A DNA stretch of 28,031 bases, taken from positions 1 to 28,031 of the forward strand of contig CBFFRP010000564.1 of assembly GCA_965644295.1 (NCBI GenBank), read 5' to 3'. The notes beneath the pieces are model-generated. The model saw nothing but the letters and a program-made list of their open reading frames with translations, was not told where the DNA came from and ran no database searches. The position numbers and the translations under genes are program-made. The first letter of the stretch is position 1, and every line of letters starts with the position of its first letter. Origin of the DNA: Paraphysomonas bandaiensis (taxonomy: Eukaryota; Protista; Chrysophyceae). Shown one piece after another: positions 1,324 to 20,721 of the stretch.

Positions 1324-4300
1324 GGTAAGGAGGGATGTGAGGGTGTGGACCTGGATGAGTCTACAGTTAATGTTTGTGATGGAGATGCTGATTGCATGAA
1401 GCTCTCTAACTCTGAACATGAGACTAAAAATTCTTCCAAGGTTCGCACAGACAAGGATGAGGCAAAGCTGTACGCCTGCTATCCTTCCTCTAAAAGTTTT
1501 TCCTCAGCACATACCGTAGGTAGAGTAGTGATAGATAGAAAATTCAAAATGGAGGAATTAGTCAATGTATTGTGTGACACGGGGGCACTTGTGGCAAACT
1601 ATGTCGCAAAAGATTTAATTGAGAAACTTCGTGATAAACTACAGCCAAGCCGTTTCTACAAAGTGAAGCACAGAGTGGTATTAGCTGACAGCAGGACAGT
1701 CCAAGATTTGACTGAAGGAGTTCGACTGAATTTGGTATTGACTGATCCTAAGTCCCACACTTATCAATACACTGGAGAATTCTTGGTCATAGACATGAAA
1801 ACCAATGATATTATTTTGGGATTGCCTGCGCTGACTGGAAAGTTGTATCCTTTCATGTGTGCGGTTATGCGTGAGGCACATGAGACTCAAATCGAAGATG
1901 TCTCTAATAGTGAAAATTCGAATGTGTTGTCATCTCTGGTAGGGGACACGGTTGATTCTGATGACCGTGTGCACCCGTGGAGGAAAGCAAGTGAGGATAC
2001 CGCCCCAGAGGATGACGAAACAGAGTTGCCTGTCCAATTTAAAGATGCGTTGACATTCTTAGGAAAGTCTCGAGAGGAAGCTCTCCAAGACTATCATGAG
2101 CAGATTAAAACTCACGTTAGTGAAGAGTTGAAGAGTGGGACTAACATCATGGAATTGTTAACAACTAAAGCGGAAAAAGTGTTCGTGCCAGACGAGTGGA
2201 GCGGTGTGAGAGGTGTGGAGCCTTTGTCTCTGAAATGGAAAAGTACTCTCCCAGACAGGATGAAACCAAAGGCCAGGCCGATTAATCCAAAGCTGTGGGA
2301 GGCTTCGGAGAAGGAATTTCGACGATTGTGTGGCTATTTCTACAGAAAAAGTCGTTCTCCCTGGGCATCTTGCCTAGTGGTAGCTCCAAAAGCCACTCCT
2401 CCATACATACGTTTTTGTGGTGACTACGTGCAAATTAACAAGCATATGGAGGTAGGGAACTACACTATTCCCAATGTCAAGCATGAGCTTGACAAGATCA
2501 TCAACTTTCCACTGTACATGGACATAGACTTGACAAATGCTTTCCATCAGATTCCGTTGGCAGATGAAACATCAGAGAGGTTGTCTATTCAGACACCATG
2601 GGGGCAATATGCTCCAAACTTCATGCCAGAAGGCATTGCTCCTGCCACAGGTGTTCTACAAGAGACAGTGCGAGACATATTCAGTGACTTTTCTGAATGG
2701 GCAATTGTTATTTTTGATAATATGCTCATACTCGCACATGATGCTCAGGACGCCCATGAAAAATTTGAAAAGATTATTGACCGATGTATTGAAAGAAATG
2801 TAAAACTTAAAATGCCCAAGAGCTGGTTGGGATTTAGAAAAGTAGATTTCTTTGGATATGTTTGTCGACATAAGTCCTATGAAGTTAACCCCGAGAAAAA
2901 AGAAGCACTAGGAAAGATTCCGATGCCTACCACGACCAAGCAGGCTAGATCTCTTTTAGGCAAGGGTGTATTTTTCTCCAGCTTTACTCCAAAATACTCC
3001 GATTTGGTGGCTCATTTGACTGACATGACCAAAAAGACTTTTAATTGGGACAAAAGTACTTGGAGGCATGATTATGAAGCTGAATTCCGTCGCTTCATCA
3101 AGGGTCTTCAAGATTCATGTGAGCTGTTTTATCCAGACTATGAGCTGGAATGGACTTTACGAACCGATGCTAGTGAGTTGGGAGTAGGCGCTGTTTTGTT
3201 ACAGAAAAAGATATTTCCGAGTGGGGAAACACAATTACAGCCTATAGCTTTCATTTCGAAAAAATTTTCCACTCAGGCTCAGAAATGGGCGACCATTGAG
3301 CAAGAGGCTTATGGTATCTTCTATAGTGTCAAGCAATTAGCTTACTATTTGATTGGAAAGCAGTTCACCATTGAAACGGATCACAATAATCTGCTATGGA
3401 TGGAGGCATCAGAGGTACCGAAGATAACCAGGTGGAGGATTTTCCTACAATCTTTCAACTTTAATATTCGCCACATTTCTGGTGCTAAGAACTGGCTAGC
3501 GGATTGGTTGTCTCGGGAACATCAAGTAGCTGCCTTGTCAGGCATATTTTTAGATGAAGACTTGGATGATGTCTATTTTCTCGGCGATGATTGCACTGAG
3601 GACGAGTTTTTCAATTTCTTGGGAAATTTTATGGAACCTGAGGATCGAGAAATAGCACCTCCATCCGAGACACAAGTTACTCCTGAAGAAGCGTTGCTCC
3701 AAGTACATAACGCCCGAGTAGGACACATGGGAGGTAGAGCTACATGGATACGTTTGAATAAGGAGTTCCCGGGTCATAACATTCCTTATAAGGTTGTTGA
3801 GGATTATATTTCCAAGTGTCCAAATTGTGTGAAAACGAGATTAGCTATGAGAGAGGCTCTCATTCCTATAGTTCGAAATCTCAAGCCGCCAAATGCTAGG
3901 AGCGCTATTGGCATTGATGCAGTAGAGATTACACCGCATGGCGCGGATGGATATACTCATATCAATGTGGTGGTTAATCTTTTCACCAAGTTAGTATACC
4001 TTGAACCGGTAAAGGGAGTCACGGCCCTTAATCTTGCCAATACGGTTTGGAAATACTGGACTCACTATGGACACACAGATCTCATTATTTCGGATCAAGG
4101 ACCGGACTTGACTTCCGATCTATTCAAACAGTTGACCGAATATATGGGTGTCAGGCACACTTTCAGCATCGCTAACCGTCACGCTAACGGTTGTGAGCGC
4201 ATTATTGGGGAGGTTGTGCGACACTTGCGTGCTTTGGTCTATGATAACAGTGAGCGTGAAGAACGCAGAGATGTTTTTGAGGATCCCAGCTGGATAGCCA

Positions 4301-5310
4301 ATGTCCAATATATTTTGAATTCGGAGGTTTCATCAGAAACAGGCTATTCTCCTTTCGAGTTGACATTTGGCTCCAATGACCTCGAATATCTAACCATGGA
4401 CATCAAAGAGTTACCAGAAAAGGCTCATGCTCGCCTTTCTGCTCTCAATGATCAATTGGCGAAACTTCGTGAAGCTTCCAAAGCGTATCAACAAAAACTG
4501 GCTAGCGAGAGAGCCAGTGAGGGTGTTCATCCTGACAGACAAAACAGATATCAACCTGGCGACTTTGTATTGTTCGACAAGGGCGCTAAGGTGCATCCAA
4601 AAATGTCTCACAGGTACATGGGACCATTTACAGTCAAACATCAATACAAAAACGATGTTGACTGCCAGCATCTGGCGACTGGACAAATGGTACGCGTTTC
4701 TGTCAGTGATGTAAAATTATTTCCAGGAGATCGTGACACAGCATACAAAATGGCCTTGCGTGATCATGAACAACATGTCATAGATAAAATCCTTTATTAT
4801 AAAGGTGATCGCGACGTGAGATCTACTATGACTTTTACTGTGCGTTTCCAAGATGGTGATGTTAGAGAAGTGCCTTATAGCAAGGATCTTTTTGACTCGA
4901 TACCCTACGCTGAGTTTTGCTCCAGCAAAAGATATCTATACCATCTTATTTATTCTACTGAAGGTGCTAAGAAATACGTATCAGACATTCGCAAACAACC
5001 GATCACTCAATTTCAACCTGGTGATCTCGCATATGTCGATTTGCGAATTTATGGCGATGTCTGGTATGATGAGTTGGATCTACCAGATTCTCATCTGCTT
5101 ACTTATGTAGCTCCTATCCAGTTCACACACTGGTACCACAAGAGCTCTAAGCGAGTATTATCGGTAAAAGATCTTCTCACTCTCCGCACCTACCGTTATG
5201 ACAACTACCTGGTACATTGTTTCGTTCATTCAGAGGTGAATACCAGCAATATGGTACTAGTAGATGAGGATTTTGCCCGACAATTTCCACAAGTCCGTGA
5301 GTCTTATTAG
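1324..5310 (+). CDS. pol: Pol polyprotein of element A: aspartic protease, RT, RNase H, integrase, chromo-like C-terminus
   Basis: Protease LCDTGA (~1570-1587). RT SPWAS, DIDLTNAFHQI, IFDN. RNase H TDASELGVGAVL, EQEAYGI, TDHNNL, ADWLSR. Integrase H-x5-H...CPNC, IGIDAV / SDQG / CERI (DDE) and a GPF motif. The frame is open from 1324, in frame with gag. Confidence 0.97.
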   Translation, partial: GKEGCEGVDLDESTVNVCDGDADCMKLSNSEHETKNSSKVRTDKDEAKLYACYPSSKSFSSAHTVGRVVIDRKFKMEELVNVLCDTGALVANYVAKDLIEKLRDKLQPSRFYKVKHRVVLADSRTVQDLTEGVRLNLVLTDPKSHTYQYTGEFLVIDMKTNDIILGLPALTGKLYPFMCAVMREAHETQIEDVSNSENSNVLSSLVGDTVDSDDRVHPWRKASEDTAPEDDETELPVQFKDALTFLGKSREEALQDYHEQIKTHVSEELKSGTNIMELLTTKAEKVFVPDEWSGVRGVEPLSLKWKSTLPDRMKPKARPINPKLWEASEKEFRRLCGYFYRKSRSPWASCLVVAPKATPPYIRFCGDYVQINKHMEVGNYTIPNVKHELDKIINFPLYMDIDLTNAFHQIPLADETSERLSIQTPWGQYAPNFMPEGIAPATGVLQETVRDIFSDFSEWAIVIFDNMLILAHDAQDAHEKFEKIIDRCIERNVKLKMPKSWLGFRKVDFFGYVCRHKSYEVNPEKKEALGKIPMPTTTKQARSLLGKGVFFSSFTPKYSDLVAHLTDMTKKTFNWDKSTWRHDYEAEFRRFIKGLQDSCELFYPDYELEWTLRTDASELGVGAVLLQKKIFPSGETQLQPIAFISKKFSTQAQKWATIEQEAYGIFYSVKQLAYYLIGKQFTIETDHNNLLWMEASEVPKITRWRIFLQSFNFNIRHISGAKNWLADWLSREHQVAALSGIFLDEDLDDVYFLGDDCTEDEFFNFLGNFMEPEDREIAPPSETQVTPEEALLQVHNARVGHMGGRATWIRLNKEFPGHNIPYKVVEDYISKCPNCVKTRLAMREALIPIVRNLKPPNARSAIGIDAVEITPHGADGYTHINVVVNLFTKLVYLEPVKGVTALNLANTVWKYWTHYGHTDLIISDQGPDLTSDLFKQLTEYMGVRHTFSIANRHANGCERIIGEVVRHLRALVYDNSEREERRDVFEDPSWIANVQYILNSEVSSETGYSPFELTFGSNDLEYLTMDIKELPEKAHARLSALNDQLAKLREASKAYQQKLASERASEGVHPDRQNRYQPGDFVLFDKGAKVHPKMSHRYMGPFTVKHQYKNDVDCQHLATGQMVRVSVSDVKLFPGDRDTAYKMALRDHEQHVIDKILYYKGDRDVRSTMTFTVRFQDGDVREVPYSKDLFDSIPYAEFCSSKRYLYHLIYSTEGAKKYVSDIRKQPITQFQPGDLAYVDLRIYGDVWYDELDLPDSHLLTYVAPIQFTHWYHKSSKRVLSVKDLLTLRTYRYDNYLVHCFVHSEVNTSNMVLVDEDFARQFPQVRESY

Positions 5311-5472
5311 ACTCACACACTCTGCTTTGACTACTTCCTTCAATATAATTTATATATCCCATGAGTTAATCCGGATTGTCTTCGTTCTGATGGCTACGTC
5401 AAACCTAGTTCTGTTGGCATCTGTAGGCGCCGGATCGGGATTTACTCAGTTTTATTTCCAAAAAATTCAACC

Positions 5473-5487
5473 AAAGAGGGGAGGGGG
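5473..5487 (+). promoter_or_regulatory. Polypurine tract of element A
   Basis: AAAGAGGGGAGGGGG, then CAA, then the LTR start TGTGAC. Element B has the same arrangement. Confidence 0.9.
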
Positions 5488-5638
5488 CAATGTGACCACG
5501 TGGCATCTCGCGTGCCTTACTTACGTGGCTATAGTGTTTTCCTAAGGGGCTACAACAAGACACTAGATAGACTAACTACCAAGAAAACACTCAGAAATAA
5601 CAGTCATTATTATTTATCACAGCATTGAAAACAACCAT

Positions 5639-6376
5639 TCACTTACGGCGCAGTTTACTTTTTCGGTGATACCACTCACCGTAGTCAGCGAGCAGCTCTT
5701 CACCTGCCGGTATCGGTCTCAGAGTCTTGACCCAGACCACATCCAACCCAGACTCATCCATGCAGAATTCACAGTTGTAAGTCAGACCCGCAGCGAGATT
5801 CTCATCAAACAAGGTGTTTACGAACCTGCCGTGGTTATAAGGAGTCCTATGATATTTCCTCTCATGGCTGGGAACCGACATGAGATAACCTACGTCATAC
5901 TTCTCATGCTCGGCATCGATGTACACGGAGTCTTGCACACGAAGAATATAAGCACCCCAATTGGGGCACCGGTCATATATTTCTCCGCTATAGAGACACA
6001 CTAGGAATCCAGACGCCAGGTCCACTAGAGCAAAGAGTCCTTTCTGCTGGGGACTCAAGCCATCTGGGTTGGCTATGTTGAGCCCCTTCCTAACCTCGAC
6101 GTATGGATTGTCGGTTCCACAACGAGCATAGAAATCCAGAACGGAGGCGCAAACATCAGGGGCTTCATCAAGGGATGCACTGTGCAAATAGGGGACTACT
6201 CTGCAGTGTTTACCACGCACGTCCGAGTCTCCTTGTGGACATCGGACTGCAAAGTCTCTGGCCCGCCTCTTAGCTGCCTCTTCGCGAAAGGCCTGACGCC
6301 GGCGGTCTTCGTACTTCTTCTTGGAAGGCCGAACACGTGATTTGCATTTGCTTGGGTCTGTAATGGGTTCTTTCAT
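5639..6376 (-). CDS. SET-domain protein (putative lysine methyltransferase), 245 aa, antisense inside the LTR of element A
   Basis: SET motifs in canonical order: KGLFA, LYSGEI, YIDA, GRFVN, NCEF, VWVKTLRPIPAGEELLADYG. Arg/Lys-rich N- and C-termini. Intronless, ATG start, no post-SET cysteines. Confidence 0.92.
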   Translation of the reverse strand: MKEPITDPSKCKSRVRPSKKKYEDRRRQAFREEAAKRRARDFAVRCPQGDSDVRGKHCRVVPYLHSASLDEAPDVCASVLDFYARCGTDNPYVEVRKGLNIANPDGLSPQQKGLFALVDLASGFLVCLYSGEIYDRCPNWGAYILRVQDSVYIDAEHEKYDVGYLMSVPSHERKYHRTPYNHGRFVNTLFDENLAAGLTYNCEFCMDESGLDVVWVKTLRPIPAGEELLADYGEWYHRKSKLRRK

Positions 6377-6678
6377 TGCAAAATGCTGATTTAGGACAAC
6401 TGTTGTTTTGTTATGAAAGTGTACGTTAGTTAGTATTTTTCAAGTACAAGTGTAGTTATGAGGAATGCAACATGATATACATTATACAGTGTTGTACAAC
6501 CGTATTTGATAGAGTCGTTGACATGACTGTATATTGTTATACTGCTTGTATGACACAGCCTGCGTTGTGGTTGTGTGTTGCAACACAGTGTGACATGGAT
6601 GACGTTGTGTGTGTGCAGCTCTACGGTTGTCTTCATACTTTATGTTTCTGTTGTGACTCAGTTTTGTTTATGTTAACC

Positions 6679-6759
6679 ATACTTGGGTACTAGCGACCTG
6701 ACATCACTAGCGGTGGTGTTTGCGTGCTGATTCTTCGCGGGAGTCAGTCACTCGAGTAT
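6679..6759 (+). other. Predicted three-stem RNA structure in the LTR of A (R/U5 side)
   Basis: Closing stem TACTTGGGT (6680-6688) / ACTCGAGTA (6750-6758) encloses hairpins GACATCACT-AGC-GGTGGTGTT (6700-6720) and CTGATTCTT-CGC-GGGAGTCAG (6727-6747). Compensatory changes relative to the B copy. Confidence 0.65.
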
Positions 6760-6922
6760 AGTTGATTGAAACATAAGTTTACCTGTAATAATATCACTTC
6801 TTTGGTCTCATTGTCTTGATTCCTATACAGTGATAGTAGTTAGCGTTATCACGAGCCATAGTCTTGGTTATCAAACCAAACTGTGAGGTGACAGTTGAGT
6901 TGTCAAACGAGGCTGCGTCATA

Positions 6923-9807
6923 ATGTTAATATCAACAAGCACATGCAAGTGGGTAATTATACAATTCCCAATGTCAAGCATGAATTGGACAAGATCATCA
7001 ATTTCCCATTGTATATGGACATCGACTTGACCAACGCTTTCCATCAGATACCTCTAGCGGAAGAAACATCAGAGAGGCTTTCTATCCAGACGCCATGGGG
7101 CCAATATGCGCCAAAGTTCATGCCAGAAGGTATTGCGCCGGCTACTGGAATTCTGCAAGAGGTAGTCAGGGAAATATTTGAAGATTTTTCTGACTGGGCC
7201 ATTGTAATATTTGACAACATGTTGATATTGGCCAACGACCCTCAAGATGCGTATCAGAAATTTGAGAAAGTGATTGACAGATGCATCGAGAGGAATCTCA
7301 AACTGAAAATGCCAAAGAGTTGGCTTGGATTTAGAAAAGTAGACTTCTTCGGATACGTATGCAGACACAAATCCTATGAAGTCAATCCTGAGAAGAAGGA
7401 AGCCCTAGGCAAAATCCCAATGCCTACCAACACCAAACAAGCGAGGTCTCTGCTTGGCAAGGGCGTGTTCTTTTCCAGTTTTACCCCTAGATATTCAGAC
7501 TTGGTTGCTCATCTCACGGATTTGACCAAATCGAAATTCAATTGGGACAAGACTACGTGGCGGCACGATTATGAGGCTGAATATCGTCGCTTCATAAAAG
7601 GCCTGCAAGATTCCTGCGAATTGTTCTACCCAGACTACAATTTGGAGTGGACACTGCGTACTGACGCTAGTGAGCTAGGAATCGGCTCGGTGCTTCTGCA
7701 GAAAAAGATTCTCGCAGATGGAACAGAGCAGTTGCAACCCATTGCCTTCCTGTCAAAGAAGTTTTCAGCTCAGGCTCAGAAATGGGCTACGATAGAGCAA
7801 GAAGCTTATGGTATTTACTACAGTGTCAAGCACTTAGCGTACTATTTGATTGGGAAGCAGTTCACTATAGAGACTGACCACAATAATCTCTTGTGGATGG
7901 AGACGTCTGAAGTACCTAAGATCACAAGATGGAGAATTTTCTTGCAATCTTTCAACTTCAGCATTAAACACATATCGGGTGCCAAGAATTGGTTAGCCGA
8001 TTGGTTATCTCGGGAGCATCAAGTTGCGGCGTTGTCCGGTATATTCTTAGATGAAGACTATGCCGATGCCTACTTCCTTGGAGAGGACTGCACTGAGGAT
8101 GAATTTTTTAACTTCTTGGGCAATTTTATGAACCCAGAAGACAGGGAAGTATCTCCTCATGCGCAAAGTTCAGTCACTCCCGAGGATGCCTTGCAACAAG
8201 TACATAATGCCCGAGTTGGACATCTCGGTGGGCGAGCCACTTGGATTCGACTTAATAAGCAATTCCCCGGCCATGGAATTCCTTACAAAGTAGTCGAAGA
8301 CTTCATTGCGAAGTGTCCAAACTGTGTTAAGACTAGATTGGCGATGAAAGAAGCGCTGATCCCTATAGTCCGAAACCTTAAGCCTCCGAGCGCTCGGAGT
8401 GCTATTGGTATTGATGCGGTAGAAATCACACCCCATGGTGCTGATGGATACACGCACATTAATGTCGTAGTCAACCTGTTCACCAAGTTAGTTTATCTTG
8501 AGCCAGTCAAAGGAGTGACTGCCCTCAACTTGGCAAACACGGTATGGAAGTATTGGAGTTACTACGGACACACTGATCTTATCATCTCAGATCAGGGTCC
8601 TGACCTAACTTCCGATCTTTTCAAACAACTGACTGAATATATGGGCGTCCGACACACCTTCAGCATAGCCAACAGGCATGCTAATGGTTGTGAACGCATC
8701 ATCGGTGAGGTGGTCCGACATTTGCGTGCCCTAGTATATGAAAACAGCAAGCGTGTAGAACGAAAGGATGTTTTTGAGGATCCCAGCTGGATACCCAGCG
8801 CTCAATACATTCTGAATTCAGAAGTCTCATCCGAGACGGGGTACTCACCCTTTGAGCTCACTTTTGGCTCTAATGATCTGGAATATTTAACTATGAATAT
8901 ACAGACTTTGCCTGAGCGTGCACACGCCAGACTGACTGCTCTTAATGAACAGCTAGAAGGCCTACGGGCGGCTTCCAAAACTTACCAGCAGCAGTTAGCG
9001 AGTGAACGTGCTGGGGAGGGAGTTCACCCGGACAAGCAGAACCGATATCAACCGGGCGACTTCATTTTATTTGACAAAGGCGCCAAGGTTCATCCCAAGA
9101 TGTCACATCGATACATGGGACCTTTTGTTGTTAAGACCCAGTACAAAAATGACATTGATTGTCAGCACCTTGCTACAGGGCAAGTGGTACGTGTTTCAGT
9201 GACAGACGTCAAACTGTTTCCAGGTGATAGAGAAACTGCGTACAGCATGGCTCTACGAGACCAGGATCAGCATGTCATTGACAAGATTCTCTACTATCGG
9301 GGTGACAGAGAGTCACGCTCCACTTTGATTTTTACTGTGAGATTTCAGGATGGTGATGTCAGAGAAGTGCCTTATAGCAAGGACCTTTTTGACTCAGTGC
9401 CTTACGCGGACTTTTGTTCCAGCAAACGGTACCTCTACCACCTGATTTATCCAGCGGAGGGTGCCAAGAAATATATCTCGGACATCCGACGCCAGTCTAT
9501 CACTCAGTTCAAACCCGGTGACCATGCATATGTTGACCTACGCATTTATGGCGACGTATGGTACGACGGACTGCAGTTACCAGACTCCCACTTACTGACC
9601 TATGTAGCTCCGATCCAGTTCACACACTGGTATCATCGAAGCTCTAGGAGAGTATTATCCGTCAAGGATCTTCTCACTCTCCGCACTTACCGTTATGACA
9701 ACTACCTCGTGCATTGTTTCGTTCACCCAGAACTAGACACTAGCACTATGGTACTAGTCGACAAGGACTTGGCTACACGCTACCCTCAAGTCCTTGAGTC
9801 CGTTTAG
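6923..9807 (+). pseudogene. pol: Pol of element B (RT C-part, RNase H, integrase, chromo-like domain), 5'-disrupted by insertion
   Basis: Colinear with A pol from (Y)VNINKHM versus A's DYVQINKHM. No stops or frameshifts up to TAG at 9805-9807. The computed start at 6895 lies in A's LTR and is an artefact. Confidence 0.93.
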
Positions 9808-9959: not shown

Positions 9960-9982
9960 AAAAAAAAAAAAGGGAGGCGGGG
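9960..9982 (+). promoter_or_regulatory. Polypurine tract of element B
   Basis: A12-GGGAGGCGGGG, then CAA, then TGTGACCACGTGGCAT. Confidence 0.88.
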
Positions 9983-10124
9983 CAATGTGACCACGTGGCA
10001 TTTCACATGCCTCAGTCACGTGTCTATAGTAAGTGCAAAACTACTAACTACGGGATGAAGACAGAGACGATAGAAGTATCAGAAACATATCATTATTACG
10101 CTACAGATTACTGAAGAACTAGCA

Positions 10125-10648
10125 CTAGGACGGGAGGTACAATTTCCCATAATCTGCCAACAGCTCTTCGCCGGCCGCAACTGCCCGAGTGGTCTGCACC
10201 CAGACCACGTCCAAACCGGACTCATCTACTACAAATTCGCAGTTGAAGCGCCAGCCAGCAGCATGGTCAGAAGGATACACCGTGTTTATATACCTACCAT
10301 GATTATGAGGCACCCGGGCCAAATAAGCTTGGGACCCCAGCGGCCAAAGGTAACCTATGTCCCGAGTGTCCCACACCTCTGGTAGAAGTCCAACACGCAC
10401 TGGCAGACTTCACCTCTTGCATCATACGATGACGAGTGCAAGTAAGGAACAACTTTGCACAGTTGCCTATGTGCATCAAGTTGTCCCTCGGGGCATCGAA
10501 CGGAGCGTTCCCACATACGCCTAGCAGCAGCCCTTTCACGGTAGGCACACCGATACCGATTGGACCTACGTAATAGAGAGCCCCGTCCCCTACGATTGCG
10601 AGGTTTAGGCTTAGTGGAGCCCGCTGCTGGATCTGTAGTGGCAGACAT
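10125..10648 (-). pseudogene. SET-domain gene of element B's LTR with an internal frameshifting deletion
   Basis: The N-part (VRCPEG...CKVVPYLHS...VCQCVLDFYQRCGT) and the C-part (DIGYL...NHGRYINT...NCEFVVDESGLDVVWVQTTRAVAAGEELLADYG) both match the A protein but lie in different frames. About 70 codons, including KGLFA, YSGE and YIDA, are missing at ~10360-10370. Confidence 0.9.
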
Positions 10649-10923
10649 TGTTTATGCAGCAATGGATATGATGTATGTATCTGATGTGGACATTGGTTCT
10701 TAGTCTGAGATAGTAGATGTAGAAAAAGCATCATACGGTATGCTGCACACTCACATACATGTTGGTCCATTGTAATACAGTAGCAGTACTCTGAATACGC
10801 AGTATTCAACGGCTAATTTACAAACTGGCGAGTGTGGTGTGTGGTGTCATCGCGAGTGTGGTGTGTTGTGCTTGTTCTATGTTGCATTGCTTTACAGCTC
10901 AGTGTTTTGTTAAGTGTTGTTCT

Positions 10924-11000
10924 GTTTGTACACTAGTGTTCTGACTTCACTGGAGGTGGGGTTTGCGCGGTGATTCTTGGAGGGAGTCACTAGTACAAGC
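10924..11000 (+). other. Predicted three-stem RNA structure in the LTR of B
   Basis: GTTTGTAC (10924-10931) / GTACAAGC (10993-11000) encloses GACTTCACT-GGA-GGTGGGGTT (10943-10963) and GTGATTCTT-GGA-GGGAGTCAC (10970-10990). Confidence 0.65.
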
Positions 11001-11134
11001 TTGCAACGCTTGACATACTGTTTAGAGTAATAATCATCCTGTTCTCCTGCAATCAGACGTACATATAGCTCTGGTTAACTCATTGTGTTTGTTTCTGCTG
11101 CACAGCCTTGGTTATCAAACCTGGCTGTGTCATA

Positions 11135-12172
11135 CAGCACCCTTCCACTTATTCTCTCCATCTGCTTCTTCACCCTCCTCACTTCACCCAGTCCCATCAA
11201 GTGCTCTAAGTCCGCTCTCCTCATGAGCTCTCTCGTCCTCATGCTCCACGGCTCCCACATCGTAGTTTGATATTTCACAGCCTTTCCCTGTACTCCTTCC
11301 ACAGCTCTTCTATGCTCTGTTTCCACAATCTTCCTCTGCTCTGCTTCCACCGTCTTCTTCTGTTCTGCTTCCACCATCTTCTTCTCCTTATAATAACATT
11401 TCGGGCAGCTCCTCATGTAGAATGGCACTGCACCTCTCTTCATCACCACACCGCAATCTCTACATCGCTTGTTCTCCGGCAGCGTCCTCACCCACTGGTG
11501 CTTGCCCTTCATTATAGCCCACATTTCATCTCGGTCAACCTCCTCCTTCGTCGCCTTTTCCTGCTGCTCCATCAACCAATCCGGTACCAATGTTTCCTCT
11601 GCAATCTCTCTTTCATCTTCCATAACAGTCTCTTTACTGCTTATGAACTTCAGCAGGTCTTCTTCCCCTTTATCCATGCATCTTTTCTCCTTCACCTCAC
11701 TCATCCTCATCTTTACTTCTTTCATCCGGTGCCTAGAGTACTCTAACAGTCCTCTGTCGCCCTCTTTATCGTGTTCGATTTTCCTTATTACTGCGCTCCT
11801 TCCTGAGTTTTCATCATCTTCGCCACTACTATCTCCCCCCATCTCCAGGTCCTTACTCATCAGCCTGGGTCCACGCCTCTCTTTTCCCTGTTCCTTTGTC
11901 TCCTCATGACCCCATCGGTCCTCCTGCACTTGGATTCGAGGCTCCTCCTTGGACTCTGGCTCCTTTTCTTCCCCATAGTAAAGATTGACATCCCTCTCAT
12001 CAGATGGTATCTCAATCTGGGACCGTGCCAACAATAGTGTGCTGGGTGGATCATGGCTGAGTTGGCCATCCTCAACCACGTTACCCAGCCCACGTTGTCC
12101 ACCAAGTGTGGCAACATCGGGTGATTGAGTATCATCCCTGTGGGTTTCAGTGAACATGTCATCTTTATCCAT
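11135..12172 (-). pseudogene. First ORF (gag position) of element C, truncated by insertion of B
   Basis: Glu/Lys/Arg-rich ORF with CxxC-x15-CxxC (CRDC...CPKC) and 8-aa tandem repeats (KKMVEAEQ/KKTVEAEQ/RKIVETEH/RRAVEGVQ). The last ~20 codons of the computed ORF are read-through into B's LTR. No capsid homology recognised. Confidence 0.55.
12089..12104 (-). promoter_or_regulatory. Primer binding site of element C, tRNA-Ala type
   Basis: The complement CCCACGTTGTCCACCA fits tRNA positions 61-76 with C61, U70 (the G3:U70 alanine determinant), discriminator A73 and CCA. It lies 2 nt from the LTR end. Confidence 0.7.
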
Positions 12173-14259
12173 GTGTGCAACAGACGGCAGGTAGATAGAC
12201 AGCGCTTAACTTCACCAACACTTATATTGAATGTCTGATTATTTAGCAATAGGCGTTGAAAGCCTGCACCAATTAGTGGCTAGAAGAATGCTAGTCATAC
12301 TAGTTAGACTACTACCCGTAACTAATCAATACAAACTCTTTTATCCTACTATTTAACGCTACAGAAGCTGCTTGTGCGTCGCCGCAAGCACCAAGGTGCA
12401 ACCACTTCCGTTCTTAGTGTGTGTTATGAGGCTCGCCATGATCGTGTGTCCTGGGACTCACCGGCGCGTGTGATCTGGAGGTCTCCTCTTGGGATGAGAC
12501 TCCACTCGCTATATGATAGATAGCCTTATGTACCTCACGGGGACTGACTTATTAGCCTTATGGCAGTTAGGGGAAACAGTAATATGCCCTTCTGAGATTG
12601 GCGATCTGGTGGCCTTCCTTTAGGCATTGTTCCAAGTGGCTCGGAGGTATGTGGATGAAGGTCTTGCAAAAGGTTATGGCCTACTGTGAAGAAGCGTCGA
12701 AATCGGCTCTTTTGCTGTCTTAGCCAGCGGTAGAGAACACATGCAAGAGGGTGTATAGCTGTACAGGGGTGGGATGTGAGGGTCATCCGGTGTGTCCAGC
12801 AACAGGGAGTCGAGAGGGAGTGTGATGGTGCAAGAGAGGCAACATCTGATTGAGGAGAGTGAGACTGCGCAACAGAACAAGAGTCACTGAGGTCGAGTAC
12901 TCTGATAGACCTATGCACGAGATGATCGTCATGATGATGATGGTCTGGAGGAGACACTCGGACGTCCTCAGCTGCCCTTGTTAGTGTCTGTGTTAGTGCA
13001 GGGGGGTACAGGCTGAGGCATAGAGTATGTGTGGAAGGAAGATGACGGCAAGGTATCAGAGACGAAGGGAGGGGAGATGGTTTGTCTGGGGGTTTTCTAG
13101 GAGGAGGTAGAGTGTACTGTGTGTGTGTATGACACTGCAGTGGTGTTATGAGTGTGTTGGACAGAGAGAGAGAGCTGGAGATGTGTCCAACAGTACAGGT
13201 AGACAGGTACATGGACATGGTGATGTGTCCAACAGCAGTAGAGGTATACACGGAATGGTATACATCCTGTAGGACACAGTAGTACAGTAGTCGAGTATAC
13301 CGTATGCGGAATACAGTGTCTATCCAATGAGATGGATGGGCTGTGGGGGTGATAGGTGAACAGGGTGAGGGGGTAGCCTGCTGGGTGGATGGACCACAGA
13401 CAAACCATGTTGGGTTGGGCTGGGTTGTCGTCAGGAGACGGCCCTGTTGTGCAGTGGAGAGGTGTCGAGAGGAGACAGGGGTTGCAGAGAAGGTACATGG
13501 GGGCCGTTTGCGTGGATCTGCTCGCACGAGCCATGCTGTAAGTGGTTGTATCCGTAGAGAACCGTGTAGGAGACGAAGGTGTCTCCTTAGGTGATAGCAT
13601 ATGCATGCGGTCAGCGCTGCATTGGTGCAGGCACGTTGTTTAACTGAAGTAGTTGAGTAGGGTGAAGGTTGCAAGGCCAGGCAGGGGGGCTTGGAGCGTG
13701 TACAACATGGTGTGACAGGTAATTTGTCGGAAGCGTGGTGGTCAACAAAATGCAGCAGTAAGGGAGTGTAAAAGGCCCTGGGCACACTGATGTGACTCAG
13801 CCACGTTCTCAATAGAGACATTGGGCTTGGAGCTGGTTAATAGGGTGAAACTTTATGTTGGACTGTATTTGCCATCGTAGGGCAGAGAATTTTTCACCAA
13901 CACTTAACTGTGCTTATTATACCCTTTTACCTTATAATTATGTCCTATCTAAAAACCCGTATAACTTAACCTGTTTTTCAATAGCTGTTCTAGAGATGGG
14001 TTTCTAGCCATAAATAGCTAGTTTCTACTTCCAGAAATATCCCGCCCCTACAGCAACCTTTTACTGTCCTACTATCTACTCCATATTGCCTCATACAATG
14101 CCTACACACTATACAACCCTGTATCTGGCCTTAATACTCGTATCCCTTGACCTTTTCTTAATCATCTTCTACCTCTTATTGCCTATACTACTTCATCTTG
14201 GCCCTTATATCACAACAACCTTATAATCCACCATTTCCACTACACCCAAAATTGCCACA
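12107..14259 (-). repeat. Putative 5' LTR of element C (2153 bp)
   Basis: Perfect 8-bp terminal inverted repeat TGTGGCAA/TTGCCACA with an adjacent PBS. The second LTR is not in the window. Confidence 0.68.
12535..13821 (-). CDS. 428-aa ORF of unknown function inside the putative LTR of element C
   Basis: Long ATG-started open frame rich in Pro/Thr/His/Ser/Cys, with RKRPP/RKPPD/RPPD motifs and an in-frame 42-bp duplication (~13180-13250). No recognised domain; the openness may partly reflect base composition. Confidence 0.3.
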   Translation of the reverse strand: MSLLRTWLSHISVPRAFYTPLLLHFVDHHASDKLPVTPCCTRSKPPCLALQPSPYSTTSVKQRACTNAALTACICYHLRRHLRLLHGSLRIQPLTAWLVRADPRKRPPCTFSATPVSSRHLSTAQQGRLLTTTQPNPTWFVCGPSTQQATPSPCSPITPTAHPSHWIDTVFRIRYTRLLYYCVLQDVYHSVYTSTAVGHITMSMYLSTCTVGHISSSLSLSNTLITPLQCHTHTQYTLPPPRKPPDKPSPLPSSLIPCRHLPSTHTLCLSLYPPALTQTLTRAAEDVRVSPPDHHHHDDHLVHRSIRVLDLSDSCSVAQSHSPQSDVASLAPSHSLSTPCCWTHRMTLTSHPCTAIHPLACVLYRWLRQQKSRFRRFFTVGHNLLQDLHPHTSEPLGTMPKGRPPDRQSQKGILLFPLTAIRLISQSP

Positions 14260-14526: not shown

Positions 14527-17500
14527 CTACAATATAACACAGCCACCTTTTTTACCGGAGCCAGAAGCCGGAGCGCCTGGATCGCCCGTGCCATTATCCA
14601 CTGCTAAATTAGAAGCACTATCATTGTCAAACTTTTCCATTCTATCCACTGTGCGATCATACTCTAACGATGTCCGTCTCTTCTTCTCTTCGTCGGTTTC
14701 TTTTCGACTATCTACACTCGCTTCCTGACCGTCTGAAGGATTCGAGTCAGGCTTCTTGTCATCAGGAGCACGTTGAGTTGCTGGCGCCTTCGCGTCATCC
14801 GTTTTCTTATTATTATCATCGATAGTAGCATCTGCATTGGTTTTCTCGTCTGTGCAACTATCACCGCCAGTCAAACTTTCAGCTTTGGCATCTGTTGATT
14901 TCTGTTTCGTTGATTTACTTGATTCTCTTAGCAAAGCCTCCTCCACAACCTTCGGCATTTTTTTATCCTTTTCTCTCTGGGCTTTTAGTGCAGCAATTCG
15001 TTTCATTTCCTCCTTCATTTTCTCTTCTAAAAACTTCTTCTTCTCTTCCTTTAACCGTTTCTTGCGCTCGTCTTTCTTGGAATCATATATTTTCTTAGCA
15101 TTTTCTTGATCTTTTCGAAGCTTTTCGTCTTCAAGAGCCTTTCTAAGCTCATCAATACGCTTCTGACGTGCAGCTTCAAATTCTTGCTGCCTCTCAGCCT
15201 CCCTTTGTCGACGAAGCTCATTCTCATGTTCTATCTTTGCTTTTTGCGCCTCTACGATTGCTTGCTCCTTGGCAGCCTCTTGCTTCTTCAGTCTCTGCAT
15301 CTCAGCTACAGCTGCAGCATGTGTTTCTTCTTTCATCTTTTCTTCCTGACGTATATGTGGCACCAATTCGTGACATAGGAAATGTAAAGTAAATCTAGTA
15401 CCTTGATTTCGGCATCCTTCAGATCTTTTTCCTTCTGCACACATGCACACAACACGTATCTCGTGAAACACGAAAGACATAAAACAGTATTTACCTTTAT
15501 TCTAGCTTCTTCTAGCGCTCGTTCTTCCTAGAGTATATATATAATACGGCGCTATAAATATCGTTTGTACTCATACCTCTTCAGCCCGTCGAAGTTCTTC
15601 GCTCCTCTTTTTAACAGCCCGCTGCTGAACACTTGATAACATGCCGCGTATCCGTTTTTTACACACAGTGTTGAGACGAGATGCGGCAAATTGTACCTGA
15701 CATATACATGAGAAGTGATCACGTGATCGCATATTCCGTTATCTCACCTCAGCCCCCAGTGCAGGTGATATACAATCTGACGTTAAACTTTCAATAATAG
15801 AGCTATCCAAACAAGTCATAGGGTGGAAGCCGAACCCCGCAACCTGTATAATCGGCTGTCAGAAAAATATATATATGGGTCAGTCAGGCAAACCATAGCG
15901 TGAAGGGAATCTATACATAAAACAGCTACTGCATTGCAGAAATCCTTTTGCATAATACAGTTCGAATCATTATCATCAGAGCGGATAGCCGACAAAGCTT
16001 CCGTCATTTCTTCCGTATTTTCAGTGGATTCACTACAAATAGCTAAACAACACCTGCATATATATAAAACCAAATTGAATTGAAGCAAATCCTACCTCAC
16101 TATCTTATACAGAACTGCTGCCATCATGTTAACGCCGATGTGAACCCTTTCTATTCCAAACACAGTTAGATAGTAACACAGCCCTTTCGGCAATACACAC
16201 CTGACAGTGCGCACACAGCTGAGAGAATACTCTGAACAGACGACGCGTGAAATCGACTCGACACGTCCTGGAGCAACAATGAACTATAAAAAAATACAGA
16301 GTACAACTTACACAGGATATATTTCTATTGCTTTCTATAATTCGAAGCCTTCCAATAATCATGGCAGGAATTGTGACAATCAAAGAGTACAGCACTGCAG
16401 TATACTCCGCATTATTATATTCGTTCTGTGTCTCCTCGGAAACTTAAATATACCTCAGTTATTTTAAGATAACTTGGTAACTCAATACACTTACCTGTAT
16501 GAATCCTCATCACCAGTGCAACGGATTCTTCCCATAACTTAAAAAGAATCATTATCACGAACATAAAGTAATTAATTTACCTTTGCATCAACAGACAGTA
16601 ACATTTCACATGCTAAAACAGAATTAAGAATCATGTCATCTGCAGCGGAGCCGTTTCTCTCTTTATATTTACACGAATTCTCAACCTACAGCTGATGAAT
16701 ACAAAGCACATCTCAAGAACACTTCTTACACACCTCTGGTAATACTTTGATGACACCAAGCTTGCGGCGATTGACTGCGGATCGACTTGGAAGCTTCAAA
16801 CGGCGAGGCTTAAGATTATCTGCTTTAGAAGATACTTCTACTGGACATGGACTCTCAGGTCTTGTATCATGTGGAGAAGATAAAATTTCTTTGCTATTTA
16901 CACGGCTAACAGTCTCTGTGTTAGGTGCTTCTTCTTCCGGCACTACAGGGGGGCAAGGTTTGCAGGTGTTGCCATTTGCATCAAAACCATCTTTTTGAAT
17001 AAATTCTGTAATAGCTTCCTCAACTAAGCTGTCGATATCAATGCTGTCTAAACTGTCATCGGGCTTCATGCTCTTTTCTTCCGCTGATTCGGGACTTCCC
17101 ACAGCTGTGTGAGGATTCGGTGGCAAACCGGAAACAATTTCGTCATCAGAGCACGAATCGTCAAATTTACGAATTCCAAACAGCAACCGAAAATCACTCA
17201 TAAAAGATAATTTACTTGTCAGTTGGTTTAAGAACAAATAGTGGTCCAAGTGAAGCGCTGACATCGAATCAATAGAACCATCTGTGAAAATAATGTGTCA
17301 GATTTGGGGTGACAGAAGTAAATGTATTACCACGATCAGAGGCAAAACTATCACTATTCCCTTCGACATCTGAATTTTTTACGAAGCAACTGTACAGGTG
17401 AAAAAAAGAATCCCATCCTTTTTCAAGGTGTGACGCTGATCCAGGTAGCGATTGCTGCTTCGGTGTTGGGTACGACAAACAGTGACGGACCCAAACAATC

Positions 17501-18879
17501 CTGAAAAAGTGCTCGATCAAAGAATCCGAATCAATATATGCAGCATTATTTTTCTCGGGCAATGATGCTTCTTCTTGTTGAGTGATCAAGCTCTTATTCC
17601 ACTGCCGTTCACCACGCATAGTACTTTTCGTCGTAATATGATCACGGTAAAATACATGTTTGCAACTGGGAAACGTTCGTTCAAAGTACTGGTGAACAAT
17701 GTTGGAAGCACTCATTAACCCTGGAGTCCATGCACGGTGTATGCAAACAGGAAGATGTTCAAAATCCAAAACTGTTCCAAGAAACATCATCTGAATATTG
17801 CTTGGGAATTTTGTCATATATGTACTAAATATTTGACTTTCTGGAAGCAAGAGTAACTACAGCAAAATGTATAAGTAAAACACAAAACAACAACAAAGAT
17901 TACTTCTTGTTGCCTAGTCCATAAGCTCTCCAGCTTCTTCTCAATTGCTTGTAGACGCTGCTCCAGGTCAATAGTGGATGAGTTTTGGCCTCCTGGAGTG
18001 CCTGGAGAGTGTACAACAGTTGGTGATGAAACCTCCTCCATCTGAGAAACAATTATAGCTTGTGCCTCGATCCAACGATCAATCTGTGCCTTTATCCATA
18101 ACATTTCAGTTATGAGTCCTACTAAAAATATTTTATCATGATTAGATTTATCCGTTAGATCTGCGTGGGCATTAGTATTCAACAGTGCATGCATTTTTTG
18201 CCGCCAGGAATCTAGTATGGAAGTAGAAAGCACATATCGTCGACGACTGCGAGCCAGTCGGAACACTCCTTGAGCAGATTGAGAGCTTCTCTCAACAAAA
18301 CTGTTCCTTGTGTCTTTTACATTTCTCTCTTGTATATGAAGTGCTGAAATTTCACATAGACGGTATCGGTTACTTGCCGAAACAGTGGGATACACTAGTA
18401 AACGAATGAATTGACAATCCAAAACATCATCAACATTTACACGTATAATCATACGATTCTTTGCTAAAACATGCGTAGTAGATACCGAAGGCTCAACTTG
18501 AACAGTCTGTAGATGTGAGAAGATTGCAAGTTGATAGAGGTGTGAGCTGGATGATGAGCTATAGGTTCCACTGTCAGATACTTTCCCTAATTACATGTTT
18601 GATATAATACTCTATCTACTGTATATATAACCATATGAACTCACCCGTATATATCTCTATTCTAGATGGAGGAATACTGCTGTTGTATTCTATGACTATC
18701 TCTCCCTGTGAAGCATATGATAGAGCCCGTCCACTACCATATCCAATTTCTTTCGGATATATTCCATCACTGTTATATAGTAACACTGTTAGGTATGTAT
18801 GTATGTGTATGTATGTATGTATGTATAGATAAGAGGCATGAGACGTACTTCTGAGATATCCATCCATATTCTCCGTCAT
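14527..18879 (-). CDS. Multi-exon host gene; C-terminal charged helical region and CaaX box (KKGGCVIL)
   Basis: 3' exons read with GT-AG borders, all phase 0 and in frame: 15843-15748, 15696-15577, 15527-15495, 15434-15402, 15345-14527. Upstream minus-strand ORFs (~15890-16050, 16713-17264, 17269-17850, 17904-18452, 18616-18879) look like further exons. Their linkage into one gene and the start codon are only partly checked. Confidence 0.65.
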
Positions 18880-19480: not shown

Positions 19481-20721
19481 ATGCATACAACAATAGAGAG
19501 ATTGGATAACATTGAAGCAGAGAGAATTATCTCTATTTTGGAAGATTCAACAGAGAAGTTAAACTTTTTAGACAGGTATGATACACTCTTCCTGCTATCT
19601 ATGTATATATATCTGAGAATATGAATAGAATTACACCAGATGTACTTCAACATCGTGATGAATTATCTAAATTTATTGGAGATGAAATATCACGTACAAT
19701 GAATGAACAAAAATATCTTGAGAAGAGATATGAGGAGTTAATTGAACATCGATCATCTATGAAAGGTATGGTCAATAAGACCAAATATAAAGAAGTTCAG
19801 GAGGAAATTCAAGATGTTAGCCGTGCTCTTCGTGAATCTACCAATAATTTAGTTAGAAATTTGAAGGAGAACCCTAATGTATCTGGCAATTTGATTAAAG
19901 TGCAGCGCGATCGCGTAGAGTTGAATGATTTGCTTCTCCGATGCATTCAAGAGCTACGTGATCGTGGTACGTATTACACTATCACGTCAAAAGTAGACGA
20001 AGAGAATAACTCGAGGAAGAAGTTTCAACAATTAAAACTGCGCGAAAAGGAATTACGCGAAACCGTGTTGAAGTTAGAGAAGCAGTTGTCCGAGGAACAG
20101 ACTCAATTCCAGCGCACAGTGGCGGACCAGAAGCAGGCAATATCGCACCTTAAAGACGAATTAGCCACTGTCAAAGGAAGCACTTCGGTGGATGCCAAAT
20201 TCAAAAGGCGAGAGAGTCTAGCGCACGTGTCAGCCATATGGAGGGAATGTAAACTTAAGGAGAGGGTGCTAGAAGAGAAACTCAAAGACCTCGAAGACAA
20301 GCTCCACATGGAAAATGTAGTCCATAACGACTCGAAAGAGTTTTTAATTCGAAAACACCAGCATGTTACCCAGGATTTAAGCACTTGGGAGGCGAAGTAT
20401 GAGCGTGATGTCGGCGAGATGGATGACAAAATAAAACAGATCTCTGATAAGAGGAAAGCCCTTCTCGACAAGTTATCTGTCCTGCAGGCACGACGACAGG
20501 CTGAGATAGAGGAAGAAATGAAGCGCAAAGCCAACGAGGAGCACGAGGCGAAGATGAAGAAAATGAAAGATGCAGAGGAAAAACGGAAGAATCATGCTGC
20601 AAAGTGTATTCAACTTGCACTCAAAGCGTTTATTAAGCGATGCAAGGAGCTGGAGGCCATAAAAGGCGGAGGGGGTAAAAAGAAAGGTGGAGGAAAGAAA
20701 GGAAAGGGAAAGAAGAAATAG
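19481..20721 (+). CDS. DRC9: Dynein regulatory complex subunit 9 / IQ-motif-containing protein G homolog
   Basis: Exon 19481-19575, GT-AG intron 19576-19628, exon 19629-20721, giving ...ILEDSTEKLNFLDRITPD... Motifs KVQRDR...IQELRDRGTY and VHNDSKEFL...WEAKYERD, a degenerate IQ motif (AAKCIQLALKAF) and a Lys/Gly tail match IQCG/DRC9 as I recall it. The paralog IQCD/DRC10 fits less well. Confidence 0.85.

Follow-up and report, generated by a model that had tools for sequence, protein, structure and literature searches.

An antisense SET-domain gene within the long terminal repeats of a Gypsy-type retrotransposon lineage in Paraphysomonas bandaiensis

The window analysed here is a stretch of 28,031 nucleotides (nt) that makes up the whole of contig CBFFRP010000564.1 (C564, approximately 28 kb), part of the 62.6-Mb eukaryotic assembly GCA_965644295.1 of the chrysophyte Paraphysomonas bandaiensis. 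It contains a Ty3/Gypsy-type long terminal repeat (LTR) retrotransposon, element A, which is nested in a related element, element B. The LTR of element A carries a SET-domain gene that runs antisense to gag-pol. Comparisons among related elements show that this gene is kept by purifying selection and co-diverges with pol over a clade of marine-protist elements. We consider it likely that this is an independently transcribed antisense gene borne in the U3 part of the LTR, and that its product would be a lysine methyltransferase acting in trans for the element lineage. The features of element A in the window are as follows:

133–1323, + strand: gag-like open reading frame (ORF), 396 aa (amino acids), from the ORF list; the gag call is based on its place upstream of pol.
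1345–5310, + strand: pol ORF, 1321 aa, with reverse transcriptase (RT), RNase H, integrase and a long C-terminal extension (Pfam).
5473–5490, + strand: polypurine tract AAAGAGGGGAGGGGGCAA, which abuts the 3' LTR start TGTGACC at 5491.
5491–6922, + strand: 3' LTR, 1432 base pairs (bp), TGTGACC...GTCATA; contig C599 holds a full copy in which this stretch forms the LTR at either end.
5639–6376, - strand: SET-domain gene, 245 aa, ATG start, no introns needed, inside the LTR and antisense to gag-pol.
6377–6922, no strand assigned: LTR part upstream of the SET ATG, presumed from the layout to hold the promoter for the SET mRNA (leftward) and the genomic RNA (rightward), plus R/U5.

The domain order of pol is that of Gypsy-type elements, RT–RNase H–integrase: Pfam matches are RVT_1 (residues 378–505), RT_RNaseH (598–704), Integrase_H2C2 (782–831) and rve (857–944), with RT_RNaseH_2 also found. 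No Pfam family was matched by the gag-like ORF at E ≤ 0.01 (a faint match to a CCCH zinc finger has an E value of 0.04).

The SET ORF lies wholly within the LTR, 148 nt from its start and 546 nt from its end. This placement had been proposed in a sequence-only reading of the window, from the position of the ORF between the LTR start, as defined by the polypurine tract, and the LTR end; it is borne out by the full copy on C599. The 5' LTR of element A itself is outside the window, as the contig begins within the element, and the sequence-only reading had raised the question of whether a 5' LTR would duplicate 5491–6922 together with the ORF. Self-comparison of C599 reveals direct repeats (3498–4921 and 11395–12826) that are 98.4% identical and whose edges correspond to window positions 5491 and 6922. 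The copy has a target-site duplication, ATGG, on both flanks, and a polypurine tract abuts the 3' repeat. Both repeats hold SET sequence: the protein encoded by the 3' copy is identical to that of the window, and in the 5' copy an 8-base indel disrupts the reading frame. As the gene is inside the LTR, reverse transcription therefore copies SET to both ends of each new insertion.

Two SET copies in each full element and one in every solo LTR had been anticipated. The former is seen on C599, albeit with a frameshift in the 5' copy; for the latter, no example was obtained, as none of five single intact copies tested (on C242, C218 and C496, and two on C70) is a solo LTR. Each of the five is preceded by a pol 3' end and is thus a 3' LTR.

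The polypurine tract and the LTR terminus are also kept in element B (tract at 9968–9985) and in metagenome relatives. At its 3' end (...GTCATA) the element A LTR runs two bases beyond CA, and the inverted terminal match is imperfect. The 5' LTR of the C599 copy is followed by GTAATTAATTACTTAATTGC..., without a TGG-type primer-binding site. A perfect 12-nt palindrome, GTAATTAATTAC, stands directly after this LTR (C599 4922–4933; L061).

The identity of the protein is supported by both profile and structure comparisons. The 245-aa ORF matches Pfam SET (PF00856) over residues 112–233 (profile positions 2–105) with a score of 30.9 bits against a cutoff of 22.4 and an E value of 3.8e-7, in agreement with the assignment made from the letters alone. 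An AF2 model (pLDDT 90.2, pTM 0.84) consists of a long N-terminal helix (residues 16–44) and a SET core. When this model was compared with the PDB using Foldseek, 282 matches were obtained at E ≤ 1e-3, and the top 50 are all SET enzymes; the matches include MLL1, SET7/9, SETD8, LegAS4 and NSD, with a probability of 1.0 and approximately 20% identity. A profile of the family has KMT5A/SETD8 as its best match in the PDB (E 7e-9), with KMT2C, EHMT2 and LegAS4 within a factor of about 30. In the profile alignment, the family motifs G.GVFA, an invariant Tyr, GRY.NT and GEELL.DYG are opposite GRGVIA, EYHG, GRLINHS and GEELLYDYG of SETD8, respectively. The ESM Atlas yielded generic SET clusters only.

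An alignment of 33 diverse members shows a basic N-terminus followed by the pattern FY...N.YVEV...NVSNP.G...G.GVFA...CPYVG...YD.GYL...PPNYGRY.NT...FNC.F...GEELL.DYG. The residues of the S-adenosylmethionine (SAM) site and the catalytic centre are invariant or nearly so: Y129 (of Y.G), Y143, N187, E227, Y232 and the G.G motif. Three of the four classic SET motifs tested (G.G, Y.G, NHS and EL..DY) are intact, and no recognisable histone-reader modules or pre-SET or post-SET zinc modules are found in the family in this alignment. Taken together, these features suggest that the LTR-SET protein is probably an active lysine methyltransferase of its own subfamily. Neither membership of KMT5A nor a substrate or product state can be claimed from the profile and fold matches, as the fold comparison gives MLL1, SET7/9, LegAS4 and NSD the same rank as KMT5A. 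A sense ORF that overlaps the SET gene (5666–6004, + strand) is treated as a chance occurrence.

The gene is maintained by selection at the protein level. The sequence-only reading had argued that SET belongs to the family and is under selection, and is not an isolated capture, on the grounds that protein motifs in elements A and B are encoded by different synonymous codons and that the flanking LTR DNA barely aligns. Both observations hold. The LADYG codons are CTC GCT GAC TAC GGT in element A and TTG GCA GAT TAT GGG in element B. A-type and C70-type LTR DNA can be aligned in only three blocks of 45–59 bp (5491–5535, at the terminus; 5724–5781, in the ORF; and 6689–6746), while the SET proteins of these two types are approximately 57% identical. 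Between subfamilies, synonymous divergence (dS) is saturated (greater than 2) and nonsynonymous divergence (dN) is 0.2–0.5; with dS saturated, their ratio (omega) is 0.09 for A versus C338 and 0.15–0.18 for C338 versus the C70-type, far below the value of 1 that would have spoken against selection. SET codon positions 1, 2 and 3 differ at frequencies of 0.21, 0.19 and 0.52, the third being about 2.5 times the first or second. Within subfamilies omega is 0.4–1, as is expected if inserted copies decay neutrally.

A protein search of the assembly with SET gave 66 matches, many of which are paired approximately 7.5 kb apart. Pairwise comparison of the examined loci shows these pairs to be LTR pairs. 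The SET gene is kept at the same place and in the same orientation in at least three diverged subfamilies besides that of element A, and with the A-type included, intact ORFs are present in at least four:

Subfamily A: 245 aa, two intact copies (window C564; C599 3' LTR).
C338-type subfamily: 237 aa, two intact copies.
C70-type subfamily: 244 aa, six intact copies.
C51-type subfamily: 230 aa, one intact copy.

The elements on C70, C242, C338, C51 and C656 were read in part rather than end to end. On C338 the LTR copies are 92% identical with indels, and only the TGTGACC-type edge was used there. No stand-alone, non-LTR copy was seen in the protein search of the assembly. The following LTR pairs were delimited:

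C378, 286884–287942 and 294437–295495: 1059 bp, 100% identical, SET without 298 bp.
C645, 164731–165790 and 172283–173342: 1060 bp, 100% identical, SET without 298 bp.
C153: 1058 bp, 99.7% identical.
C589, 2028–3387 and 9884–10942: unequal pair, the 5' LTR of 1360 bp with the full 244-aa ORF and the 3' LTR without 298 bp.

The two LTRs of C589 (L041, L047) are approximately 99% identical apart from the 298-bp deletion, which suggests inter-element recombination or template switching between co-packaged RNAs. Mosaic LTRs occur on C433, C315, C273, C567, C634, C366, C182 and C472 (L004–L009, L026–L030, L054–L060): compared with the A-type, their right 520 bp (window 6401–6922) are 98–100% identical and their left 347 bp are 84% identical, with a shortened two-piece SET remnant between. 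This structure points to LTR recombination between subfamilies. Two C70-type LTRs on C70 (7237–8596 and 13380–14739; L036, L038) are 6143 bp apart, each after a pol 3' end and without the usual gag start following; this arrangement is tandem or internally deleted.

The family extends well beyond this genome. When 1.84 billion cluster representatives were searched exhaustively with HMMER, no more than 110 relatives were found at E ≤ 1e-3. Most are stand-alone proteins of 200–330 aa whose alignments span almost the full query and take in the region before the SET core, and relatives of LTR-SET also carry PF00856. Six relative lineages are represented on DNA contigs (30–42% SET identity), and in all six the SET gene is tail-to-tail with a gene on the opposite strand, 114–330 nt away. 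This neighbour is a Gypsy pol in five of the six lineages (Pfam) and, in L062/L063, a cut, unscanned ORF. In L064, L065 and L066 this SET gene is at the same time upstream of the gag-like ORF, where a collapsed or shared LTR would sit. Four of the six lineages have a polypurine tract followed by T(G/A)TGACCGC...GCTAT between the stop codon of the neighbour and that of SET, a terminus like that in the window (in this check L071 was unclear and the L064 contig does not include the interval). This recurrence of the same layout in distant metagenome elements is a further sign of a selected component of the family. Tara Oceans and other plankton data suggest that the family is ecologically widespread.

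Across seven elements, SET identity is correlated with identity in the integrase region (Mantel r 0.89, exact p 0.0014), and SET evolves faster than pol. The pattern fits one old SET acquisition followed by co-inheritance with pol.

Expression of the gene is seen most clearly in the C338 subfamily. One relative, P0001, is from an MMETSP poly(A) transcriptome, and its transcript (L068, 915 nt) aligns without gaps to a C338 LTR copy over 909 nt at 98.8% identity; it starts 104 nt before the ATG and extends 91 nt beyond the stop codon. The terminal A run of the transcript is non-templated (it is absent from the genome) and is preceded by an AAUAAA-like signal, and polyadenylation takes place within the LTR, 82 nt from its edge. 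In the C338 subfamily of this species or a close strain, SET is thus made as an unspliced, polyadenylated mRNA of approximately 0.9 kb that ends in the LTR. By analogy, the mRNA of the window subfamily would begin approximately 100 nt before the ATG and be polyadenylated approximately 90 nt past the stop codon, inside the LTR. RNA matching this subfamily is present in the marine poly(A) metatranscriptome X5:

5603–6377, - strand: stretch matched by a 777-nt contig of X5, which covers the window SET ORF.

Further RNA contigs of X5 match 6624–6922, where contigs run past the LTR end, and no X5 contig was found on pol 3000–5498. RNA contigs of X5, X3 and X9 have a 3-base insertion (TGT) behind window position 6075, equivalent to one extra SET codon. 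The RNA therefore comes from a closely related variant rather than from the window locus itself.

Element B, into which element A is inserted, has its own SET sequence. Its features in the window are as follows:

6923–9807, + strand: element B pol, the 5' side cut off by the insertion of element A into the RT region (Pfam RT/RNaseH/IN on ORF 6895–9807).
9986–11134, + strand: 3' LTR of element B, C70-type with a 205-bp internal deletion (polypurine tract 9968–9985).
10125–10648, - strand: broken SET remnant in the element B LTR, two ORF pieces in different frames.

The element B pol is colinear with that of element A from approximately 2434 on, with 76–81% DNA identity and in register with the RT of A. 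The end of the element A LTR (6922) is directly against the RT of B; element A was therefore inserted into an older relative. The element B LTR is 99.5% identical to the 1360-bp C589 LTR, except that L041 positions 1740–1944 are missing. A SET homolog at the same position and in the same orientation had been reported from the letters alone, and it is present, although it is not intact: because of the 205-bp deletion relative to the full subfamily LTR, it is split into out-of-frame pieces. The two ORFs, 10355–10648 and 10125–10400 (both - strand), match residues 6–92 and 159–236 of the A protein, and the middle of the domain is deleted.

Both datable element A insertions are within pol genes of B-like elements (window 6922/6923, in RT; C599 3497/3498 and 12826/12827, in the pol 3' end). 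Such insertions into its own kind would fit targeted insertion, but two cases in a fragmented, repeat-rich assembly prove nothing. To the right of element B, long ORFs without a Pfam family are present at 11075–12172, 12535–13821, 14527–15480 and 16713–18452 (all - strand) and at 19621–20721 (+ strand); two of these are Lys/Glu-rich and coiled-coil-like, and one ends in a Cys-x2-Cys...Cys-x2-Cys motif.

These observations are best accommodated by the following scheme. A nuclear lysine methyltransferase produced from LTR copies would be supplied in trans to all copies of the element. At or near element copies it would alter the methylation of chromatin or a nucleoprotein partner, to the benefit of the lineage; possible benefits are countering host silencing, tuning the element's own expression and marking places for integration. 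The LTR region from the SET ATG (6376) to the right end would act as a divergent promoter for both the SET mRNA and the genomic RNA. As the genomic RNA carries SET antisense in its 3' U3, the two RNAs are complementary, and their regulation may be coupled.

Several points weigh against this interpretation. The enzymatic role and its substrate, like the transcription starts and the divergent promoter, are inferred from sequence and layout. The His of the NHS motif is replaced by Thr/Ser (GRFVNT in the window protein, GRY.NT in the family consensus), and catalysis is not assured. The co-divergence with pol was measured on only seven elements and is partly driven by the closest pairs. The RNA of the window subfamily consists of assembled contigs, which indicate presence and not strand, ends or level, and the clean mRNA (L068) belongs to the C338 subfamily rather than to that of the window. 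Approximately 12 intact SET copies in the assembly stand against at least 30 that are deleted, frameshifted or fragmentary. Among the latter, the SET-deleted elements on C378 and C645 (L045, L046, L048, L049) have LTR pairs that are 100% identical; they therefore transposed after the gene was lost, probably recently, and SET is accordingly not needed in cis. Loss of SET in mobile copies is compatible with a trans-acting protein (as gag and pol are for non-autonomous elements), and it is also compatible with dispensability. The contribution of SET to transposition may be modest or conditional.

A bolder version of the same idea, which we put forward as doubtful, is that in a marine-protist Gypsy clade the LTR is an antisense cassette for an active histone methyltransferase, that the mark is read by Royal-family-like modules at the integrase C-terminus, which would steer insertion, and that the SET subtype was passed to a LINE-like (long interspersed nuclear element-like) context. 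The pol extension (window 4678–5307, approximately 210 aa past the integrase core) is conserved, and is modelled as two small beta-barrel modules. VIA-align comparisons give Z scores of 4.4–5.2 with chromo/chromoshadow folds (residues 28–86) and 4.7–5.8 with Tudor/MBT folds (residues 107–190), a range that the tool calls common. No Foldseek match was obtained for the extension at E ≤ 1e-3, and an aromatic cage is not clearly kept. A chromodomain in the element A pol was not detected by Pfam (no Chromo match at E ≤ 10) or by sequence matching to the PDB, and none was found in 10 pol relatives. The LINE-like context is a 1907-aa ORF on C566 (162–5885; L069) with an N-terminal SET domain (residues 24–194), a PR/SET domain (1394–1498) and an AP (apurinic/apyrimidinic) endonuclease (1565–1807). 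The N-terminus of this ORF (approximately 170 residues) matches the LTR-SET profile with an hhalign probability of 99.3% (E 1.6e-20), including the family-specific pre-SET region; the subtype is therefore common to different retroelement classes in this genome. If the bolder version were true, each LTR would be a mobile mark-writing unit, and the element would carry a transposon-borne writer–reader circuit.

A variant of the favoured explanation is that the substrate of SET is not a histone but, for example, Gag or integrase of the element itself or a host factor that replication requires, and that SET is a replication accessory rather than an epigenetic writer. Among the solved structures nearest in profile and fold are those of SETD8/KMT5A and SET7/9, which are well known to act on non-histone substrates, and the family is without the histone-reader and zinc modules mentioned above. 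However, none of the data singles out a substrate, and chromatin is equally compatible with the basic N-terminal helix and the nuclear-type composition; we regard this variant as unlikely. The substitution of the NHS His could instead mean that the SET fold is catalytically dead and kept for its binding of histone tails or host silencing factors, to which it could be a decoy or adaptor, and inactive SET/PR folds retained for binding do occur in other proteins. The near-invariance of Y129, Y143, N187, E227, Y232 and G.G in the 33 members is unexpected for a mere scaffold, and makes this quite improbable.

It is very improbable that the protein serves the host, as a domesticated or mutualistic SET that, for example, heterochromatinises repeats, with the LTR as a mere vehicle and selection at the level of the host. 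Element A insertions inside like elements (window 6922/6923; C599) do place copies in clusters in repeat-rich DNA, and expression is seen in poly(A) RNA from both culture and the field. Against this, the divergence of SET follows that of pol, numerous unrelated samples contain SET together with elements, copies decay after insertion (as indicated by the within-subfamily omega and the many deletions), and no stand-alone copy outside an LTR was seen in the assembly search; selection on the lineage of the element is what these facts indicate. Finally, the notion that the ORF is a chance or decaying remnant without function, which the many broken copies might evoke, or that it lies in the 3' internal region, is already refuted by the low omega between subfamilies with saturated dS and the third-position excess, by intact ORFs in at least four subfamilies, by the existence of an mRNA, and by LTR edges that are fixed by the repeat, the target-site duplication and the polypurine tract.

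The trans-acting, LTR-borne methyltransferase that we favour can be compared with several known systems. Transposons are usually viewed as targets of host chromatin marking. To our knowledge, few transposons have their own epigenetic enzyme, and the published retrotransposon cases are DNA methyltransferases fused into pol. The sequence-only reading knew of no described LTR-embedded SET gene, and no LTR-embedded or retrotransposon-encoded SET gene was found in the literature searched (Repbase, Dfam and subscription journals were outside its scope).

Coding sequence in U3, and hence at both ends of the provirus, has precedents in vertebrate retroviruses: the superantigen gene sag of mouse mammary tumour virus (MMTV) is in the LTR U3, and nef of human and simian immunodeficiency viruses (HIV/SIV) overlaps U3. 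Both genes have the sense orientation, rely on viral sense transcripts for their expression and have no relationship to SET, whereas LTR-SET is antisense and has its own poly(A) site in the LTR. SET domains have also been tied to mobile or viral genomes before. SETMAR, a fusion of SET and a mariner transposase, is a host gene that captured a DNA transposase, and vSET is a minimal stand-alone SET protein (as is LTR-SET) of a chlorovirus, a large DNA virus. Neither belongs to an active retrotransposon, and both are distant in sequence (the best solved relatives are approximately 20% identical).

KMT5A/SETD8, the H4K20 monomethyltransferase, resembles LTR-SET in being a small SET protein without pre-SET and post-SET zinc clusters and in having the G.G, Y.G and GEELL.DYG motifs. 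The two are only approximately 20% identical, and LTR-SET has its own pre-SET region (FY...N.YVEV...NVSNP.G) and an insert (YD.GYL...PPNYGRY), and does not have the NHS His.

The closest published parallel is with SymbioLINE-Dnmt, SymbioDIRS-Dnmt3 and KnitGypsy-Dnmt3, retrotransposons with acquired DNA cytosine methyltransferases and Ka/Ks values of less than 0.2 (de Mendoza et al. 2018, PMC5890265). As in those elements, a retroelement lineage of microbial eukaryotes has an epigenetic writer of its own (here a candidate one) under purifying selection (less than 0.2 there, 0.09–0.18 here). In those cases a DNA methyltransferase is fused in the sense orientation into Pol or ORF2; here, a gene of predicted protein-lysine-methyltransferase type is separate, antisense in the LTR and has its own mRNA. 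Antisense accessory ORFs near the 3' end are also reported for Retand, Ogre and other plant Gypsy elements (PMC7264820, PMC11963269). These elements and human T-cell leukaemia virus type 1 (HTLV-1), with HBZ, share with the LTR-SET elements an extra gene antisense to gag-pol near the 3' end. Such genes are internal, downstream of pol and ahead of the 3' LTR (or have their promoter in that LTR and run inward), are therefore single-copy per element and are mostly of unknown fold, whereas LTR-SET is contained entirely in the LTR and its enzymatic fold is defined.

The arrangement is confirmed and the structural reading is supported; these elements seem to bring with them a candidate chromatin-marking enzyme. 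We consider the interest of the finding to be high, given the unusual placement of the gene, the evidence of selection and expression, and the spread of the family in marine plankton. There is a practical consequence for annotation: LTR-SET ORFs will pass as host SET genes, and counts of "epigenetic machinery" in protist genomes and transcriptomes will be inflated. Placement in the LTR means that the gene is duplicated at each insertion, would stay in any solo LTR, and is transcribed independently against the direction of the element. This is a novel organisation for an accessory gene of a retroelement. Marine protist genomes are little studied, and the system offers a concrete, testable way to ask whether mobile elements in them actively write chromatin states.

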